A stretch of 63,909 nucleotides of DNA, counting the filler, from Lenisia limosa (lineage: Eukaryota > Protista > Breviatea): assembly GCA_001655205.1 (NCBI GenBank). It is 14 parts of 14 records of this genome, joined end to end, with 100 filler letters (N's around TTAATTAATTAA, not from the genome) between each part and the next. Parts side by side here need not be neighbours in the genome. Positions count along the whole stretch, not along the records: positions 37,286 to 46,216 come from LPNZ01010917.1; 13 more parts are not named here. One strand, given 5' to 3'. The position numbers and the translations under genes were made by a program. Of the stretch, positions 5,946 through 46,500 are shown in pieces (position 1 is the stretch's first letter; each line of letters starts with the position of its first letter). The notes under the pieces are model-generated. The model saw nothing but the letters and a program-made list of their open reading frames with translations, was not told where the DNA came from and did no database searches.

Positions 5946-8900
5946 TTACTGCGTTTCCGATGGCGATATTGAAAAGAGCAGCAAATTCCCCCGCTCTCCC
6001 CCACCTGTTTCCCCCACCTGTTTATTTTTGAGGCACAGTTTCAAATATCGTGGCACAGCGGTCCACTCAGAGAAGCTTTTGGGTATGGACGGGAAGTGCT
6101 TTCTAGGGAGTGAATGGTGCGAACAAGACATAAGCGTCTTATCTCCCCCACTTGAAGGCAGGACTGGTGTGGAGGACGGGATGGCTCATAGCAAAACGGT
6201 AGGAGTGGACGAAGAGAAGGGGGAAGCGCGACGAGAAGTAGTTGAAGTAGCCGTGGGGGAGAGGGCCCATTTGGTCCTGTGGGGTGACTGTAAACTGGGC
6301 ACATGTATAGAAAAGCAGACAGCATTGTAACTAATCAAACAAAATGTCAGAGCAGCGTCTAAAAGATCTAGCACAGTCTTTAATGCCCATGTCGACATCT
6401 TCAAAGAACACAAACTAATACCTGTAAGTTTGGCTCAAGATCTCGGAAGTGGTTTCGTTTATTTCGAACAACTCTCAGGAGGTCCCTTGTAGATCCTGAA
6501 TCATATTTTCGGTACCTGTAGGAGTGAGTAAAACCAGTTTTATTATTCTTGATAATATTTCAATTTTAAAGGATGCATTATATGTCAATCAAGTATTACA
6601 ACGATCCTCAAGGAAATCAGCCCAACCCTCACCTGCCTAAGTTGGCGATCAGCTCACTGCTGAGCAGTGTATCCCATCCGTCTAAGAGGTAATGGATGAT
6701 CATCAATGGAAAAAAGGGCGATGAAGTGTGTTCATAATAATAAAGCATCAAGGGGTCAAGAAAGGTCAAAAATAGTATTCACATTTTGCTCGCATTTTGA
6801 TTTGATTATTGTGCGATGTATGTCATAATGTGTTTCTTTCTCGAAGTTGTGTTGTGGTTGACCCTGTTTGTGGATTCTGGTTTATTTGCCTTTTGTTTAC
6901 TTCCAATTTGATCCCCTTATGTATGTCTGATTCATCGCAAGGAGACATTTTCACTCCTATGTGCCATTATTGCCCACATCTCCGCAAAAAACCACAGCCT
7001 TCCCGTGCCTGACCGCAACGTCCCAACAGGCTGTGATCAAGCGTAAATTCTTGTCTTCGCGGCTGTCTGAAGAAGCTCACCAAGGCGCGTGGTGTCGGTT
7101 AAGTGAGCTCCCCCCCCCCACTCCCTTTGGTATGACAGTTTCGATTCAAAATTGAACCACAACTCATCTTATGCAAACATTTAATAGGGATCTGATTTAC
7201 GCATTTGACTGTGTTGTTTTCCAAACGTGGAATATTGTTTTGTGTCAATAAAAAGTTGTTTCCTTTCATAGTACGCCTAATTGTCCTCTTGATAACATCT
7301 TCGAAATCGATGAACGGGTATCATGGACCAACCTCTTGGTAACAAAAAAAATGTGTGGGGAAATAAGTGGAATGGAAAACACGACCATAAATGTGGTTTG
7401 TTTTGAGCAGTTGATGAACTGGTTTTTGTGCAAGCCGTCTTGTCTGCCCCCCCCCCACCGGTCTCAGAAATGCCNNNNNNNNNNNNNNNNNNNNNNNNNN
7501 NNNNNNNNNNNNNNNNNNNNNNNNNNNNNNNNNNNNNNNNNNNNNNNNNNNNNNNNNNNNNNNNNNNNNNNNNNNNNNNNNNNNNNNNNNNNNNNNNNNN
7601 NNNNNNNNNNNNNNNNNNNNNAGGGGCTTACCGGAAGAACTTCAAGCTCGTCTGAGAGATCCAGCAAGAACGAGAGTTTCTGTTCAATGTCCCAAAATGC
7701 AGGGTGGTCGAGAACTTGTTGAATAGACGGCCTAAAAGAGATAAAATGGAGGCTATCTAAATGGCACCTTCTTCCTAGAATATTATCCTGAATATGGACT
7801 ATTCTGGACCACACCATCAATTGCCTCTTGAGCTATGGAGGCACAGTGTGCGAACAACATTTCCTTTTACACCCCCTGTCACCTATACGACGGCGAATGT
7901 GCAACCATGGCGTGAATGAGGTCCGAAAAGTCGGGAGCATCAGCAAGCACTTTGGATCCCACGATCTTGGCTGCCGAAATATGGGCTTCCCTCTGTACAC
8001 TATCGCCAAATGGGTGGCCACCTCCGGAGATGACGTAATAGAATAGTAAACCTGGAGGTAGGTGAGACAATTGGTTCTTTTCTTCTATCGTACTTTCAAT
8101 TGACATAATTAACAAATTCTTCTCAGTTTGTATTACTCAATAGCTCAACCCGGCCTACCTAGAGAGAAGATATCAACCGACTTCGTGAACCTTCGTGATT
8201 CTGTTGAAGCTGATCTGAGGAGTCAGTTTAGACAAGTGGAACAAATAAGCAAATGGACATACACTACCTCAAAATACTACCGGAACCTGATGGTCAGAAG
8301 AGTAGTACCTCGTCGTCCAACATTATTTTAATAAAGTATCCATCAGTGTGATCAATGCAATGCCCCCCACTCTTCAATTGGAGAGTTCTGCAGGACGGGT
8401 GAGGAGTCCCAAGATGACGATTCAACCCCCAGGAGTTCAGGTGCCCTCCACCTACAAAGTCAGCTACCAACTCATCAATGTCCTTCAGCATGGGTACATA
8501 ATTTATTAACCTTTCAAAAAAGTGGCACAAATTTCCATTTGGATAAAATAGCAAAACTGCTCCGAGTTTGTTGCGTATACATTGAAAGAGAAGCCTGAAG
8601 CAAAACGAAAAATCATATCACTTTTGAATCATTTTCACACGTGTCAACTATCATTTCCACGCAGTGAATGCTACTTTATCCACTCGTATGAAATCGACAA
8701 AAAAGTCGGTCATATGATCATGTTTAAAATATTAAAGTGCACAGTTATATTGATGGTGTGCAACAGCATACATATCATATGTAATACACGATATGTTTGT
8801 ACTATACTATGTTACAAATAACCCCCAATACCCCAGGGTTCCCCCAGGTCTATTAGTTACGAACGATGAGCGCAGTGTATCAATCTTCCGTCCAATAGAC

Positions 8901-37353: not shown

Positions 37354-38999
37354 TAATGTCGCTGGAAGGTGCCACATCATACACCTGGCATCTGGCGGAC
37401 CATGAGGGCGGAACCGGCACGTTTTTGGAGTCCAACGCCGCTGGAGAGCCTGTTGGCCAATGTGGGGACTAATTGGGAAGGGTGTGTGTTAATGTGTGGT
37501 GTGGGAGGCTAATTGGGGAGGATGTTTGTTTGTGTGTGTGTGTGGGGGTGGGTGTTAAGCAGCGAGAGGTTGATTTTATTGGTGTTTGGTCTTATCCCTA
37601 TGCAGTGAGAGGTTGATTTTATTGGTGTTTGGTCTTATCCCTATGCAGTGAGAGGTTGATTTTATTGGTGTTTTGGTCTTATCCCTATGCAGTGAGAGGT
37701 TGATTTTATTGGTGTTTGGTCTTATCCCTATGCAGTGAGAGGGTGATTTTATTGGTGTTTTGGTCTTATCCCTATGCAGTGAGAGGTTGATTTTATTAGT
37801 GTTTGGTCTTATCCCTTTGCAGTGAGAGGTTGATTTTATTGGTGTTTGGTCATGGGATTTATTTTGTGATTATTTTAGACGTTTCTGGGAAGACGGAGGG
37901 TTTCAATGGAGAGCTCTTGATTGAAATTAAAAATGGCCTTTTTAAGGTGAAACTCTCTCCGACGTTTGTGGGTTAATTTCGAATTGGAAACAATACCCCC
38001 TCTCCTAACAACCATTTCTTTACCCCTCCTCCTCCTCACATACTGACAAACCCAGAGCTGACCTCTATCGGGCTATTCGGGATTTGGTATACGCCAATAC
38101 CATGTTAGAGTCAATTGAGTACACCGACTTGTCAATGAAAAACGTGGGAGGAGGGGTATTTAATATAATTGCCAGGTTTACTCTCCCAGGGAGCCTTATT
38201 ATTGCTGTTTTTTTTGTATTTTGTTAGTTTGGAGTTTCGATTATTCGTTTCGAAATGAAAACCAATACGCCAGTATTTTTCATCGAAAATTCCCAAATTT
38301 TCTTCATTTTACTCTCCCAGGTCATCCAACAGAGTTGATTTGGACATTTTTCCAATTTTTTTTACTCCCCCAGGTAGCCTCTATATCGTGGACAACCTTT
38401 AGCGGGGCCTTCTACACCGCGGCGTCCGTGCCGCACTACATCCCGTACTGCTCTCTTTTTGGGACCTACTCCTATTCGCATCGTGAGAATGCCACTCCGG
38501 CGGCAGGCGGAAGTGGGGAGTGGGGGTAAAACGAAGGAAATTTCGATGAAGACTATTGGCGTAAAGGGGGGGGAGTTGTTAAACAATAAAAAGGGATAAA
38601 AGTGTTATTTTTATGGCGTGCGTGGGGATAAGGAATATCAAAGAATGGATGGAGATAANNNNNNNNNNNNNNNNNNNNNNNNNNNNNNNNNNNNNNNNNN
38701 NNNNNNNNNNNNNNNNNNNNNNNNNNNNNNNNNNNNNNNNNNNNNNNNNNNNNNNNNNNNNNNNNNNNNNNNNNATGCGTTTCAGCTTCCACAACAAACC
38801 ACTTCTCCAGGATTTGGGTCAGATAAGCTGCCTTTTTTTGATGTTGTAATATATGTAATGTAATGTGTTTCACAAAGAATCATTTGGTCAGATAAGCTGC
38901 CTTGTTTTGATGTACATGTATGTACAACACCTTATCACCCCATTCCATGAATCACCAAGCACCAGCATCTCCGCTCCCCCTTTGCCGATGGACCACCAG
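37354..38999 (+). CDS. Hypothetical protein, partial
   Basis: Exons bounded by canonical sites: MSLEGATSYTWHLADHEGGTGTFLESNAAGEPVGQ; ADLYRAIRDLVYANTML; VASISWTTFSGAFYTAASVPHYIPYCSLFGTYSY. No family recognised. Confidence 0.35.
37559..37851. repeat. Intronic minisatellite, ~7 x 43-44 bp
   Basis: Unit GCAGTGAGAGGTTGATTTTATTGGTGTTTGGTCTTATCCCTAT repeated head-to-tail with few substitutions and no spacers. Confidence 0.95.
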
Positions 39000-40159: not shown

Positions 40160-42877
40160 ATGAGCATTTTTAAGGCTTGTGAAAATGGGAGTCTACAGGA
40201 AGTACAGCGGCTCGTGGAAGCAGATGACAGTCTTATTAATTCTGAAATCCCTGTAAGTAGAATGGAAGAGAGAGGAACTAGCAAGATTCTTTTGTCTTCT
40301 TTTTACTGTGTCACCTATTAAACAATGGCTGACAAAATAATCACTTGGACACTACAGAAAAGCTGTTTTGATGAACATGGGTGAAAGAAAAGCTGTTTGA
40401 TGAGCATGGGTGAAAGAAAAGCTGTTTGATGAACATGGGTACTCTTACCTTTGTGCTTTGGTGATATTCGATGTGAACTTTCTTATTTTGGTTGCTTATA
40501 ACATATATATCTATATATTATATGATATATATATGAGATACAATATGTAATATTTTGTATTTTGTTCTCGTATTTATAGCGCATTCAATGACCTTCATTG
40601 AACAGGGAGAAACACCCCTCAGATATGCCGCTAAATCTGGTCACTTGGATATCGTGAAGTACCTCATTGAAAAGGGTGCCAATCTTGATAAAGCTGATGC
40701 ATATGTGGGTGATCAAGATTGTTAATTGAAGAGATTAACATGTGTTACTTACCTTTGTTCTTTGTTGACATTCTACGTTACTTTCCTTATTTGGTTTGCC
40801 AATATCTTTGGATGACCTTTTTAAACAGGGAAGAACACCCGTCAGCCATGCCGTTGAATTTGGCCACTTGGATATTGTGAAGTACCTCATTGAGAAGGGT
40901 GCTGATATTGATAAATCTAATATAATTGTGGGTGGTGATGTTGTTTAATTGAAGAGATTAACAACTTCTACTCTTACCTGTGTGCTTTGGTGGTATTTGA
41001 TGTTAACTTTCTTATTTTGGTCATATATATCATATGATAATATGATATACTACAAATAGTGCATATCATACATATATTGCATTTTGTTCTCGTACTGAAA
41101 GCGTATTCGATGACCTTCATTGAACAGCCCCTCAACTATGACTCTAAATCTGGCCACTGGTATATCGTGAAGGACCTCATTGAGAAGGGTGCCGATATTG
41201 ATGTCGCTCATGTATTTGTGGGTGGTCAAGATTGTTAATTGGAGAGATTAACATGTGTTACTTGCCTTTGTTCTTTTTTGACATTCTACGTTATTTTCCT
41301 TATTTGGTTTACCAATATCTTTGTATGACCTTTTTAAACAGGGAAGAACACTCCTCAGCCATGCCGTTGAATCTGGCCACTTGGATATCGTGAAGTACCT
41401 CATTGATAAGGGTGCCGATATTCATAAAGCTGGTGGTGCATGTGTGGGTGGTCAGGATGGTTAAAGTCGGAGTCCACTTAAATTGGGGAAAACAATGTTT
41501 TTTTTTGGAATTTCGCCTGCTTTTCCATGTCACATTGCAAGAAATATGTACTTTTCTGAGTCAACTCCAAGAGAATTGGAAAGCATTAATATTTTGTCGT
41601 TTTCTAGTTATTAGCTTTTCCTAGAAGATATGATATGATATATTTTGCATTATGTTTTCGTATTTATAGCACATTTGATGACCTTCATTGAATAGGGAGA
41701 AATACCCCTCAGCCATGCCGCTGAATCTGGCCACTTGGATATCGTGAAGTACCTCATTGACAAGGGAGCCGATATTGATCAAGCAGATATTGAGGTGGGT
41801 GGTCAAGATTGTTAATTGAAGAGATTAACATGTGTTACTTCTTACGTTGCTTTCTTTATTTGGTTTGCCATTATCTTTGGATGATCTTTTTAGCAGGGAA
41901 GAACACCCCTCATATATGCCGTTGAATCTGTCCACTTGGATATCGTGAAGTACCTCATTGACAAGGGTGCCATAATTGATCAAGCGGATATTGAGGTGGG
42001 TGGTCAAGATTTTTAATTGAAGATTTTGTTGATATTCTACGTTACTTTCCTTATTTGGTTTGCCAGTATCTTTGGATGACCTTTTTAAACAGGGAAGAAC
42101 ACCCCTCAGCCATGCCGTTGAATTTGGCCACTTGGATATCGTGAAGTATCTCATTGACAAAGGAGCCAAAATTGATATAGCTAATGGATATGTGTGTGGT
42201 CAAGATGGTTGATGAAATTTGGTAATTGTATTTATGGCATATTCGATGACCTTTTTGAACAGGGATCGCCCCTCAGCTATGCCGTTGAATCTGGCGCCTT
42301 GGATATCGTGAAGTACCTCATTGAGAATGGTGCCGATTTTGATAACGCTAATGGATATGTGGGTGGTCAGGATGGTTGATGAATTTTTTTGACGTAATTC
42401 TACTTACTTTTGTGATTTGGTGATATTCCTTGTTATCTTTCTTATTTGAGTTGCCAATATCAATTTGACATTTGGTACTGGTTTTTTTGGCATATTCGAT
42501 GACCTTTTTGAACAGGGATCGCCCCTCAGCTATGCCGTTGAATCTGGCCACTTGGATATCGTGAAGTACCTCATTGAGAATGGTGCCGATATTGATAAAA
42601 CTGATAATGATGTGGGTGATCAGGCTGATGAATTAGATATATTTTCATGTGTAAACTTTTATTTGCCTTGTATTTTAATGATACTCAATTTGAAATGGGG
42701 CGACATTCAGTTTTTGGGTAGTAAACTTCTGTCTAAGAATATAATTCTCTCAAAGTGATTACTCTATTGGCGATCTTCATTAAACAGGGAAGAACACCTC
42801 TAAGTTACTCCGTGAGTTTGGCAGTCATCGTTCTCCTTATTGATAATTATGCTAATCTCACACTTTCCGATGTTGAA
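40160..42877 (+). CDS. Ankyrin-repeat protein: N-cap exon plus 10 single-repeat phase-0 exons (C-terminus unresolved)
   Basis: Exon 1 40160-40252 (MSIFKACENGSLQEVQRLVEADDSLINSEIP). Repeat exons: 40606-40704, 40829-40927, 41128-41217, 41342-41443, 41696-41794, 41897-41995, 42093-42191, 42263-42358, 42516-42611, 42788-42877. Each is flanked by (C/T)AG and GTG(G/T)GT; consensus GRTPLSHAVESGHLDIVKYLIEKGADIDKADxx; no stop codons. Confidence 0.93.
40355..40440. repeat. Tandem repeat, 3 x 29 bp, in ankyrin gene intron 1
   Basis: GAAAGAAAAGCTGTTTGATGAACATGGGT. Confidence 0.85.
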
Positions 42878-43878
42878 GTGGGTAAAGACATGGTATTTTT
42901 GATATGAGTGGGATTTTCCTACTTTCCTAAAGACCGAATTTCCTGATAAACCCTCGATAAGGATTTTTTGTCTTTGCGTGAGTCCTGTCCAAGACATACA
43001 TGTATTTCTTCTTCTACCTTTCTCGATTCGTGTAATATACAATTTTCTTTGTTTTCTTTTAAAGACACATTTTTGTTGGAATAGTTATTTGCCAACTTAT
43101 TTCCATTCGAACTTGAACCCACCTATAGGACGTGGATAATAACCGCCATTGAAGAGAATAGTTTATGGGAAATGAGCATCATCAATAGTCGACTGTTTTG
43201 ATAAAGTGTGTGATGGTTTTGTTACGTTTTTGCTTGGATCCTTATGGTTGTAAGATCTTGCGAATGTGCTCTGATGGTTTAAGTTTGTCAAAAACGACGG
43301 ACTTGTCAAAATGAATCAGTCTTTGTTGATAAATCTGATCACTGGAAAATAGTTTTCTAATTTCAGTTTTCAAAATATTTCGTAATTGTTTTGAAAAGTG
43401 AAATCAAGATTTCAGATTTCAGCGGAGTATTGAAGAAAAAATGTGAAAATTTCAGGAAATTTCAAAATTCTTATTTCAAATTTGAAAACCCAGTGTGCAA
43501 ACTGTCTAATGAAATGTATTATAGAGTCTGTCCACTGTTATTACACGTGCGTGAATGTAACTATAAAATAGAGGCCCTTGAATTCAATTTCAGTTGAAAG
43601 TCAATTAAACTGGACTGTCATCCTATTTGTCTCTTTAGCAGCTGTATAATATGGACCAGTATTCTACCATTTCGATGCAATAAAGGCCATTTACTTCCCG
43701 TTCTGGGATACTTTGAAGCCTAAATTCTACATTTTTTTGGAGGGAAAATTGTCCTATTTATTCGGATTTTTTTTTGGAAAATGCCTCAAAAAACTGGAAT
43801 ATTCATAATATTTAAAAATGGGGGAATATCGAGAAATGAATACTTTCCAAAAAAATACCAGGACACGGTGTACCCGCA

Positions 43879-45039: not shown

Positions 45040-45260
45040 AATGCAAATTTTATAAACTCCCAGCCTGTTCCTGGAGACGCCTCTTGAGTAGACACCAGAT
45101 GTGTTCGATGGGGCTGAAGTTAGGCGATTGAGCGGCCAATCCATGTTCTCGAAGGCTTGAATAGTCAGGTTTATGAATAGTCAGGTTAATCTAAAAATAG
45201 TGGATGCTTGCAATAGCGGTGTACTTAGGGTCATTGTCGCTGGAAAATGGCCTTCGTCAG
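45040..45260 (-). pseudogene. Decayed Tc1-type (DD34E) transposase remnant
   Basis: With two frameshifts and one stop the minus strand reads IFQ-DNDPKYTA...MDWP-AQSPNFSPIEHIWCLLKRRLQE. These are the second-D and E catalytic motifs of Tc1 transposases (FQQDNDPKHT; WPSQSPDLNPIENLW). Confidence 0.8.
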
Positions 45261-46500
45261 GTCGTTGCATTTCACAAACAATAGTGCAAAGCAAAGTTCC
45301 ACTCACCATTTCAAATATGTCATGAATTGTAGGAGGGTCACCAATGAAAATGTTTGACACAATTTTTTGAACAAGCAGCATTTCCTTCTTTTAACAAAAC
45401 TGGAAATTATGAAGAGGGATTACTGGACAATGAAAAGATCTGGTCTGTGATTGTGCTCATCTTATCTCATTTGGCTACTTGGGTCATCCTCTTATCATTT
45501 CCACCAGTTTCTCTCATACTGCTAGAGTGGTGATCTAGCACATCTAGGTTATAATTGACAAGATCTTCTCATTTCAGTCTCATTTTGCAACTTGTGCTTT
45601 ATCCAAGGGTATCTTGATGGTATTTATTTGGAGTTAATAACAATAATAAAGAATACTATGTTATATAATATTATAATATAATCCAATATCTCTATCAGCA
45701 TGTGTGAACAAACGGTTCGGTCGGATATTTGGACTCTGCGAATAAAGTTAATACGAAATAAATTGGTAAAGTGATGGCTAACAAAGTCAAAATGCCTCCA
45801 TAGAATATGCTTGACAAATAAGATAAAAAGGAACATGGGGGCTACAGGACAACTTTCAGTGCAGATGCGATACTTTTGGCTGACACCTGGGGGGGGGGGG
45901 GNNNNNNNNNNNNNNNNNNNNNNNNNNNNNNNNNNNNNNNNNNNNNNNNNNNNNNNNNNNNNNNNNNNNNNNNNNNNNNNNNNNNNNNNNNNNNNNNNNN
46001 NNNNNNNNNNNNNNNNNNNNNNNNNNNAAAAAAATAACAAAAATAATAAAAATATTAATAAAAATCCGATCACTCCGGGACAGAAAGAAAATCCCTGGAA
46101 TGTTATTTAAAGCGAGATGTGTAGCCTTAGATTGGTATTTAATAGCAACCATTCTTCCTCCCTTTAAGTGGCTGACCTGGTTGAGGGTGGGAAGTCGGCT
46201 TTTGAATACGTCTACTNNNNNNNNNNNNNNNNNNNNNNNNNNNNNNNNNNNNNNNNNNNNTTAATTAATTAANNNNNNNNNNNNNNNNNNNNNNNNNNNN
46301 NNNNNNNNNNNNNNNNTTTTTTTTTTATTATTATTGGGGGCTTATTGGAGTGGAAGGTATTTTGAGGGGGTTGTTATGGTTGTATGAAGAAGAAGGGCAT
46401 TATGGAAGTAGACGAAGCCGCCTGTTCATCATTTATTTTGCAACGTCCTAACAAAGTCCCTATTGTAGAATCCAGTAGACATTGGAGAGACAACGATCAG

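Follow-up and report, generated by a model that had tools for sequence, protein, structure and literature searches.

An ankyrin gene of the breviate Lenisia limosa, in which each repeat occupies an exon of its own (here called a cassette), raises the question of whether such a layout serves to generate a repertoire of binders or reflects a more ordinary history. The gene lies at positions 40160-42877 of the window, a 63,909-nt stretch made of joined parts of assembly GCA_001655205.1. The piece of the window that contains it (record LPNZ01010917.1) comprises 8.9 kb; this was the piece searched, and the gene model was re-derived from its genomic sequence. The evidence makes it fairly likely that the locus is a young array in a lineage-specific family, and that it codes for an intracellular binder, probably constitutively spliced, whose surface has been diversifying over evolutionary time.

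The model consists of an N-terminal exon (exon 0) followed by ten cassettes of 99, 99, 90, 102, 99, 99, 99, 96, 96 and 90 nt. All ten introns are in phase 0, and every exon length is divisible by 3. The cassettes all have AG/GT borders, with 20 of 20 splice dinucleotides intact; the cassette donor is GTGGGT in nine cases and GTGTGT in the remaining one (E7), and that of exon 0 is GTAAGT. When joined as predicted, the exons give an open frame of 1062 nt without a stop. A preliminary description of this DNA had reported one-repeat, phase-0 exons of these lengths in a continuous open frame; the recomputed lengths agreed with it exactly, and Pfam Ank matches were obtained exon by exon. Single exons matched Ank (PF00023 / clan Ank) with E-values of 3e-10 and 2.5e-9, scoring 40.2 and 37.3 bits against a cut-off of 21.1. 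Since these matches cover profile positions 2-32 of 33, each exon corresponds to one repeat in the Pfam register. The features of the locus are as follows:

40160-40252, + strand: exon 0, 93 nt, beginning with ATG; N-terminal capping half-repeat of 31 aa, donor GTAAGT, no Pfam match alone
40253-40605, + strand: intron 1, 353 nt; 3' part of beta class; 29-nt tandem repeat at 40356-40440
40606-40704, + strand: cassette E1, 99 nt, A-type; Pfam Ank E = 3e-10
40705-40828, + strand: intron 2, 124 nt, alpha class; 5.6% diverged from intron 4
40829-40927, + strand: cassette E2, 99 nt, B-type
40928-41127, + strand: intron 3, 200 nt, beta class
41128-41217, + strand: cassette E3, 90 nt, A-type; 9-nt in-frame deletion at the 5' side and several framework substitutions; the most degenerate internal cassette
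41218-41341, + strand: intron 4, 124 nt, alpha class
41342-41443, + strand: cassette E4, 102 nt, B-type, with one codon extra
41444-41695, + strand: intron 5, 252 nt; 3' part of beta class
41696-41794, + strand: cassette E5, 99 nt, A-type; acceptor TAG
41795-41896, + strand: intron 6, 102 nt, alpha class with deletions
41897-41995, + strand: cassette E6, 99 nt, chimera of B-type and E5-type
41996-42092, + strand: intron 7, 97 nt, alpha class with a deletion
42093-42191, + strand: cassette E7, 99 nt, B-type; donor GTGTGT
42192-42262, + strand: intron 8, 71 nt, gamma class; equals intron 9 minus an internal deletion, 6 of 71 aligned bases differing
42263-42358, + strand: cassette E8, 96 nt; its unit has 90% ungapped identity with the E9 unit over 162 nt
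42359-42515, + strand: intron 9, 157 nt, gamma class
42516-42611, + strand: cassette E9, 96 nt
42612-42787, + strand: intron 10, 176 nt
42788-42877, + strand: cassette E10, 90 nt, degenerate C-cap-like repeat
42878-42907, + strand: possible unspliced terminal tail; donor-like GTGGGT, nine in-frame codons, stop

The ankyrin exons are spread over all three genomic frames, the introns carry stop codons, and read-through meets a stop within a few codons; splicing is therefore required for the open frame. Profiles of the cassettes, at both the DNA and the protein level, found exactly ten copies in the 8.9-kb piece, all on the + strand. With these profiles, no hidden, silent, relic or antisense cassettes were detected in the introns, the flanks or the opposite strand of the piece. 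The splice model predicts ten consecutive repeats plus an N-terminal half-repeat, which may be able to stack into a solenoid. The last cassette, E10, is a weak match to Pfam Ank (E = 0.061, 14.1 bits), but was found by the cassette profile all the same (26.8 bits with the DNA profile). It is followed by a donor-like GTGGGT, and read-through beyond it ends after nine codons at a stop at 42907. The locus would code for an intracellular, ankyrin-only protein. Its predicted length is at least 354 aa, and it would consist of an N-cap, nine internal repeats and a final, degenerate repeat that resembles a C-cap. Inspection of the N-terminal exon by eye revealed no apparent signal peptide, and an Rfam scan of the piece matched no family. 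A polyA RNA run from the same study contains 6-7% of the locus's sampled words, which is a weak hint of expression.

A row of similar exons might also be produced by misassembly of reads from dispersed paralogs, in which case the array, its copy number or its order would be an artefact. The scaffold is indeed a gapped one built from short reads, with runs of N and a contig end in poly-G, and many similar cassettes exist elsewhere in the family (see below). However, exact look-up of the open reading frame (ORF) starting at the ATG identified the same array in a second assembly, ENA ERZ3820729, contig NODE_2085 (L001), which was used only as a check for scaffolding errors. The two sequences are 99.99% identical over 7126 nt, with one mismatch, although reads may be shared between the assemblies, so that the match is not independent proof. 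Coverage of the array is even, at ~28x compared with 26-35x in other contigs. Further, neighbouring cassettes and introns differ by 5-20%, sufficient for unique read placement, and the cassettes of the other loci are at most 89% identical and have unrelated introns, such that chimeric joins would show. We consider an artefact very improbable. The scaffold N gaps at 38659-38774 and 45901-46027 are filled in L001 by genuine sequence, 81 nt long for the first (1015-1095) and 66 nt for the second (8222-8287). Just before the second gap stands a run of poly-G, as is typical of artefacts at read ends.

The growth of the array can be followed in its introns. Whole-unit alignment separated these into three classes of homologous sequences, 5-23% diverged within a class: alpha (introns 2, 4, 6 and 7, located between A-type and B-type exons; p = 0.05-0.115), beta (the 3' part of intron 1, and introns 3 and 5; p = 0.11-0.23) and gamma (introns 8 and 9; p = 0.085). 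Block alignment showed copies of a two-exon unit, E1-alpha-E2-beta, E3-alpha-E4-beta and E5-alpha-E6, and a repeat search found a 300-nt ungapped repeat pair, with 90% identity, that spans an intron. E8 and E9 make up another pair of recent origin. E6 is chimeric: B-type sequence extends from the upstream intron through the first ~20 nt of the exon, and the last ~40 nt, with the adjoining ~28 nt of the downstream intron, are of the E5 type. Exon positions 61-99 of E6 show 5 differences to E5 versus 12-13 to E7 and E2. This pattern is the predicted footprint of an unequal crossover, or of conversion, with a breakpoint inside the exon. As a whole, the alignments show growth by ordinary unequal exchange, through serial tandem duplication of exon-plus-intron blocks; it gave rise to the two-exon units E1-E2, E3-E4 and E5-E6, to the pair E8/E9 and to the chimeric E6. 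The four exon indel events were all multiples of 3, and the intron indels were not so. With phase-0 exons of ~99 nt, an unequal crossover between cassettes preserves the frame both when it breaks within an intron and when it breaks inside the conserved exon framework. The preliminary description had noted indels in multiples of 3 and had proposed alternative splicing or unequal recombination. The former holds for the exons, and unequal recombination is substantiated by the homologous introns, the recurring two-exon units and the chimeric exon.

The splice sites of the cassettes lie in near-identical contexts. On the acceptor side there is a conserved motif, TGACCTT..AACAG, which includes a branch-point-like TGAC/CTGAC ~12-15 nt upstream of the AG and a short pyrimidine-rich stretch. 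On the donor side, the conserved GTGGGT is followed by a G-rich stretch. The branch-point consensus is yUnAy, and G-runs act as intronic enhancers of short introns. The two contexts read as ordinary splicing signals that were passed on with each copy, and are near-identical because whole exon-plus-intron units were duplicated. The similarity pointed out in the preliminary description is real, but it is no evidence of a dedicated cassette mechanism, as common descent and ordinary signals explain the contexts. The A-type acceptor context (TTCAATGACCTTCATTGAA), present at 40584-40602, 41106-41124 and 41678-41693, is a near-perfect palindrome around the putative branch point, and could form a small hairpin. 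The tandem repeat of intron 1 at 40356-40440 consists of 2.9 copies of 29 nt with 94% identity.

Growth by blocks of repeats has precedents. In-register duplications of several ankyrin repeats have been described at the protein level, with the mechanism not named (Galpern et al. 2020, PMC7314423; Bjorklund et al. 2006, PMC1553488), among them recent 'super-repeat' duplications in the ankyrin arrays of marine invertebrates. The locus studied here is similar in that multi-repeat blocks were copied in tandem and in register, giving a similarity period greater than one (here the two-cassette A-B unit). It differs in that the DNA shows the copied exon-plus-intron unit, with breakpoints inside exons too. 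In the ciliate Tetrahymena, thousands of LRR genes are built of 90-bp exons separated by phase-2 introns; a clonal origin has been reported for them, followed by successive expansions via unequal crossing-over, with young, species-specific members (Xiong et al. 2019, PMC6564038). Tandem exons of one length, a single intron phase, a reading in terms of unequal crossing-over and the presence of young members are common to both cases, but here the repeat is ankyrin, the exons are of 99 nt, the introns are in phase 0 and six loci were sampled.

These six loci include five paralogs of the window array. Paralogs were retrieved with a profile of the stop-to-stop ORFs around each cassette (A2), and the contigs containing them were then fetched. 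The profile matches were short single-cassette ORFs with a shared arrangement ('..KQ', 33 residues, 'VG..'), all of them from ERZ3820729 and with a coverage of 26-35x. Five or more further loci of this assembly share the one-repeat-per-exon design, so that the search for paralogous arrays suggested in the preliminary description was successful. Five were fetched:

L003: 13 cassettes, together with an N-cap exon homolog and, on the opposite strand, a single partial cassette
L005: 8 cassettes
L004: 6 cassettes
L006: 5 cassettes
L002 (ENA ERZ3820729 NODE_164): 3 cassettes, a dispersed copy of three consecutive L003 cassettes

On the + strand, 34 of the 35 paralog cassettes have in-frame AG..GT borders, and 34 of those are open. 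The lengths of these 34 cassettes are multiples of 3, with 99 nt the most frequent (24 cassettes), followed by 102 nt (5), 96 nt (4) and 111 nt (1), and their donors are mostly GTGGGT or GTTGGT. Homologs of exon 0 were found at L003:9000-9077 (79.5% nucleotide identity) and L006:3175-3221. The exons of the window locus are 80-89% identical to those of L003; of the introns, only the ~20-25 nt next to the donor and the ~37 nt next to the acceptor can be aligned between the two loci. None of the introns inside L004 and L006 could be aligned to each other, and L003 contains one homologous pair. These comparisons indicate that the phase-0, one-repeat-per-exon design is ancestral to the family and older than the window locus, and that the exons of the family are, by the same token, conserved in the long run. 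Since homologous introns have been kept only in the window array, plus the one L003 pair, this array is the youngest of the six loci sampled.

The number of repeats varies over the six loci (10, 13, 8, 6, 5 and 3 cassettes), indicating birth and death of copies. The three-cassette block at L002:9642-10189 was copied from L003:11358-11919, and its middle cassette has stop codons and has lost the in-frame donor; the block shows that cassette blocks disperse and die within the family. A partial ankyrin cassette at L003:8290-8352 (- strand), just upstream of the array of 13, may belong to a separate, diverging gene or be an inverted relic. In wider searches, a 45-aa single-cassette ORF matched only itself, and the exact 26-nt core of the cassette gave 0 matches in JGI metagenome contigs. 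The cassette profile, when compared with 1.84 billion representatives, returned only generic giant ankyrin proteins ordered by repeat number, a result uninformative on relatives. Precomputed Pfam annotations of the paralog contigs include only Ank, besides an unrelated eRF1. The public gene calls on ERZ3820729 contigs treat TGA as sense (the product of L001:4693-5124 has an in-frame TGA), probably because a prokaryote-type gene caller was applied to eukaryotic DNA rich in AT. Precomputed ORFs and absent Pfam matches need care for this reason.

Divergence within the window array was analysed in four phylogenetically independent nearest-cassette pairs of our choosing (E8/E9, E2/E4, E5/E6 and E1/E3). 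The synonymous difference was 7.8/84 = 0.093, and that of the introns in the same contrasts was 24/291 = 0.082, so that two neutral proxies agree. The non-synonymous difference amounted to 46/300 = 0.154, or 1.8 times the neutral proxy (p = 0.0075 in Fisher's test). In the designed ankyrin binders of Binz et al., positions 2, 3, 5, 13, 14 and 33 are reported to be randomised; these six positions, set before counting, were taken as those that form the ankyrin binding surface. The difference at these positions was 15/51 = 0.287, compared with 25/306 for the neutral proxy (3.6-fold; Fisher p = 8e-5), and 0.127 at all other positions (p = 0.08). The contrast can be seen by eye towards the 3' ends of E1, E3 and E5, where about half the bases of the final five codons differ, while the adjoining 45 nt of intron are 96-98% identical. 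A codon model applied to the nine internal cassettes gave an omega of 1.7 and rejected values of omega <=0.5 (p <= 3e-5); partitioned codon-model tests were underpowered.

Framework residues, among them I-V-K, L-I and G-A, do not vary among the nine internal cassettes, and in a neutral simulation on the inferred tree all nine remained open in 6.7% of the runs. The overall pattern fits purifying selection on the fold together with diversifying selection on the binding surface. After duplication, non-synonymous divergence outpaced that of introns and synonymous sites, with frame, splice sites and framework being retained, although the numbers are modest. The idea of diversified binder cassettes, put forward in the preliminary description, is supported in that the protein changed faster than the neutral proxies at binding-surface positions. 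Its null, simple tandem expansion without functional diversification, survives in part: tandem expansion is the main process, but the surface has diversified.

Several observations speak against a functional, diversifying binder. The codon model did not reject omega = 1 (p = 0.07), and the case for positive selection depends on the intron yardstick, few sites and self-chosen contrasts. The array has a mosaic recombination history, its segments are possibly of different ages, and the beta introns are as diverged as the exons. The second assembly, ERZ3820729, may derive from the same reads as the first. E3 and E10 look partly degenerate. Finally, a terminal exon, a stop and conserved downstream coding sequence were not found in the 3 kb downstream, or by tblastn against the paralog loci.

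Part of this would be expected of a neutrally drifting or dying young duplicate, be it a functionless expansion or a truncated copy lacking a proper 3' end. An omega of ~1.7 that does not differ significantly from 1, the 9-nt deletion and framework substitutions of E3, the degenerate E10 and the failure to find a terminal exon, stop or conserved downstream coding sequence are all compatible with such a fate. Further, the family does yield dead copies, as the L002 cassette with stop codons illustrates, and RNA support for the locus reaches at best 6-7% of the sampled words. A dying copy, however, accounts poorly for 1062 nt without a stop, given the 6.7% obtained in the neutral simulation for the nine internal cassettes alone. 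Nor would it be expected to confine the length of exon indels, unlike that of intron indels, to multiples of 3 (4 of 4), or to keep all 20 splice dinucleotides intact and the framework residues of the nine internal cassettes invariant. Moreover, the surface positions have changed not to the same extent as the neutral proxies but more. A dying duplicate is thus an unlikely explanation.

The other alternative is a programmed repertoire generator, in which alternative splicing, mutually exclusive splicing or somatic recombination would combine the cassettes variably, so as to give many binders from one locus for non-self recognition. Any subset of the cassettes would stay in frame, the binding-surface positions are hypervariable, and the family spans multiple loci, with one decaying dispersed cassette block and one opposite-strand partial cassette in L003. 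The situation also resembles that of the ROCO-LRR and NB-ARC-TPR genes of Ectocarpus, which have one repeat per exon and undergo dynamic exon shuffling (Zambounis et al. 2012, PMC3341825). The two systems have in common fixed-length, frame-preserving repeat exons, a variable repeat number, and loci that arise and die, leaving decayed copies. The excess change at the binding surface here may also correspond to the signs of positive selection reported there for positions that face the ligand. The systems differ in that the fold is ankyrin here rather than LRR or TPR, in that no GTPase or NB-ARC domain was found here, and in that relic cassettes are absent from the introns and the antisense strand of the window locus; somatic shuffling has been demonstrated in neither.

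Relic, silent or antisense cassettes that might act as donors are thus absent from the window locus, which argues against a generator of this kind. The loop sequences are not shared with the five sampled paralog loci, and there is no sign of templated conversion: in these five loci, which represent part of the family, no donor for the hypervariable exon ends was found within 3 mismatches, bar one weak match. The likeness to Dscam is superficial and limited to the layout of tandem, similar, frame-compatible exons. Dscam clusters offer alternative versions of one domain half, from which one exon is chosen by docking/selector RNA pairing, whereas the exons of the window locus are units of a solenoid that needs several of them stacked. 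A lone ankyrin repeat would not fold, making a Dscam-type choice of one in N structurally implausible. No docking/selector complementarity was found either; an inverted-repeat scan of 40160-43000 detected only AT-rich low-complexity pairs and the self-palindromic acceptor motif, and intron 1 showed no complementarity of this kind to later introns.

The older paralog arrays, moreover, keep their exons open and their splice sites intact, as constitutive exons would. A signalling or effector domain, which the preliminary description had proposed to look for after 42877, was not found within 3 kb downstream. Neither ORF domain matches nor conserved coding sequence indicative of one were present in the 3 kb downstream or the 1.4 kb upstream, although split exons could escape such a search. 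Taking both sides into account, a programmed generator appears improbable. We give similarly little credence to the family being a counterpart of the brown-alga LRR/TPR receptors in which cassettes are reassorted by frequent germline unequal exchange, possibly with regulated exon skipping or somatic exchange. Were this true, the result would be a more diverse repertoire for the intracellular recognition of symbionts, parasites or viruses.

The vertebrate ankyrins offer a different comparison. In ANK1, ANK2 and ANK3, one 33-aa repeat is encoded per exon, successive repeats have the intron at the same position, and the exons are spliced constitutively into one long solenoid. These arrays are of ancient origin, with unrelated introns and with repeats that purifying selection has conserved throughout the vertebrates, and they are joined to spectrin-binding and death domains. 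Their membrane-binding domain was reportedly found by Gallagher et al. in 1997 to be encoded largely by 99-nt and 198-nt exons. The window locus is like these genes in the type of repeat, the allocation of one repeat to a 99-nt exon and the preservation of the frame. In contrast, the window array is young, with introns 77-95% identical within a class, and is ankyrin-only as far as seen; it is also part of a lineage-specific family with multiple loci, and its protein sequence evolves fast. In sum, the window locus fits the kind of gene that has one repeat per exon and grows by tandem duplication; the donor relics and effector domain of an immune-type shuffling receptor, and the docking/selector features of Dscam, were not found in it.

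Some observations were made in the surroundings of these loci. An eRF1 gene (L002:10723-11997, + strand, NODE_164) adjoins the decayed three-cassette block. Its N domain is ~85% identical to that of human eRF1, but the stop-codon-recognition motif NIKS reads HIKN, and the frame is interrupted three times, by one canonical 27-nt GT..AG intron and two ~23-nt insertions without GT..AG ends. Mammalian chains gave it clearly better scores than did the remaining eRF1 chains listed, which are plant and yeast proteins; on its own, this comparison would suggest an animal genome, sampled in a metagenomic or holobiont study. The gene may be a paralog that has diverged or one that has decayed to a pseudogene; alternatively, it may point to unusually tiny introns or to altered termination in this organism. 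In the window, broken ORF fragments at 45050-45260 (- strand) look by eye like the C-terminal portion of a transposase of the Tc1/mariner type ('DNDPKY..', '..QSPNFSPIEHIW..'). They contain stops and a change of frame, and neither of the two short pieces matched Pfam. A 43-nt minisatellite (6.8 copies, 96% identity) occupies positions 37559-37851, preceded by a TG-rich 40-nt repeat at 37461-37547.

The preferred reading of the window locus remains that of a young array coding for a diversifying ankyrin binder. Constitutive splicing would join the cassettes into one long solenoid, and the concave surface of the latter would be remodelled by germline birth-and-death and diversifying selection, toward a fast-changing or novel partner. 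The locus is a clear example of a known evolutionary process, with no new mechanism. Its value lies in that the growth of a repeat protein has been caught in progress, the copied unit, the intronic and exonic breakpoints and the later divergence of the surface all being legible in the DNA; protein-level surveys of ankyrins could not show the copied unit and the breakpoints. Should the family turn out to be large and polymorphic, it would form a natural counterpart to the designed ankyrin binder libraries, with a fixed framework and a variable surface, and a candidate recognition family.

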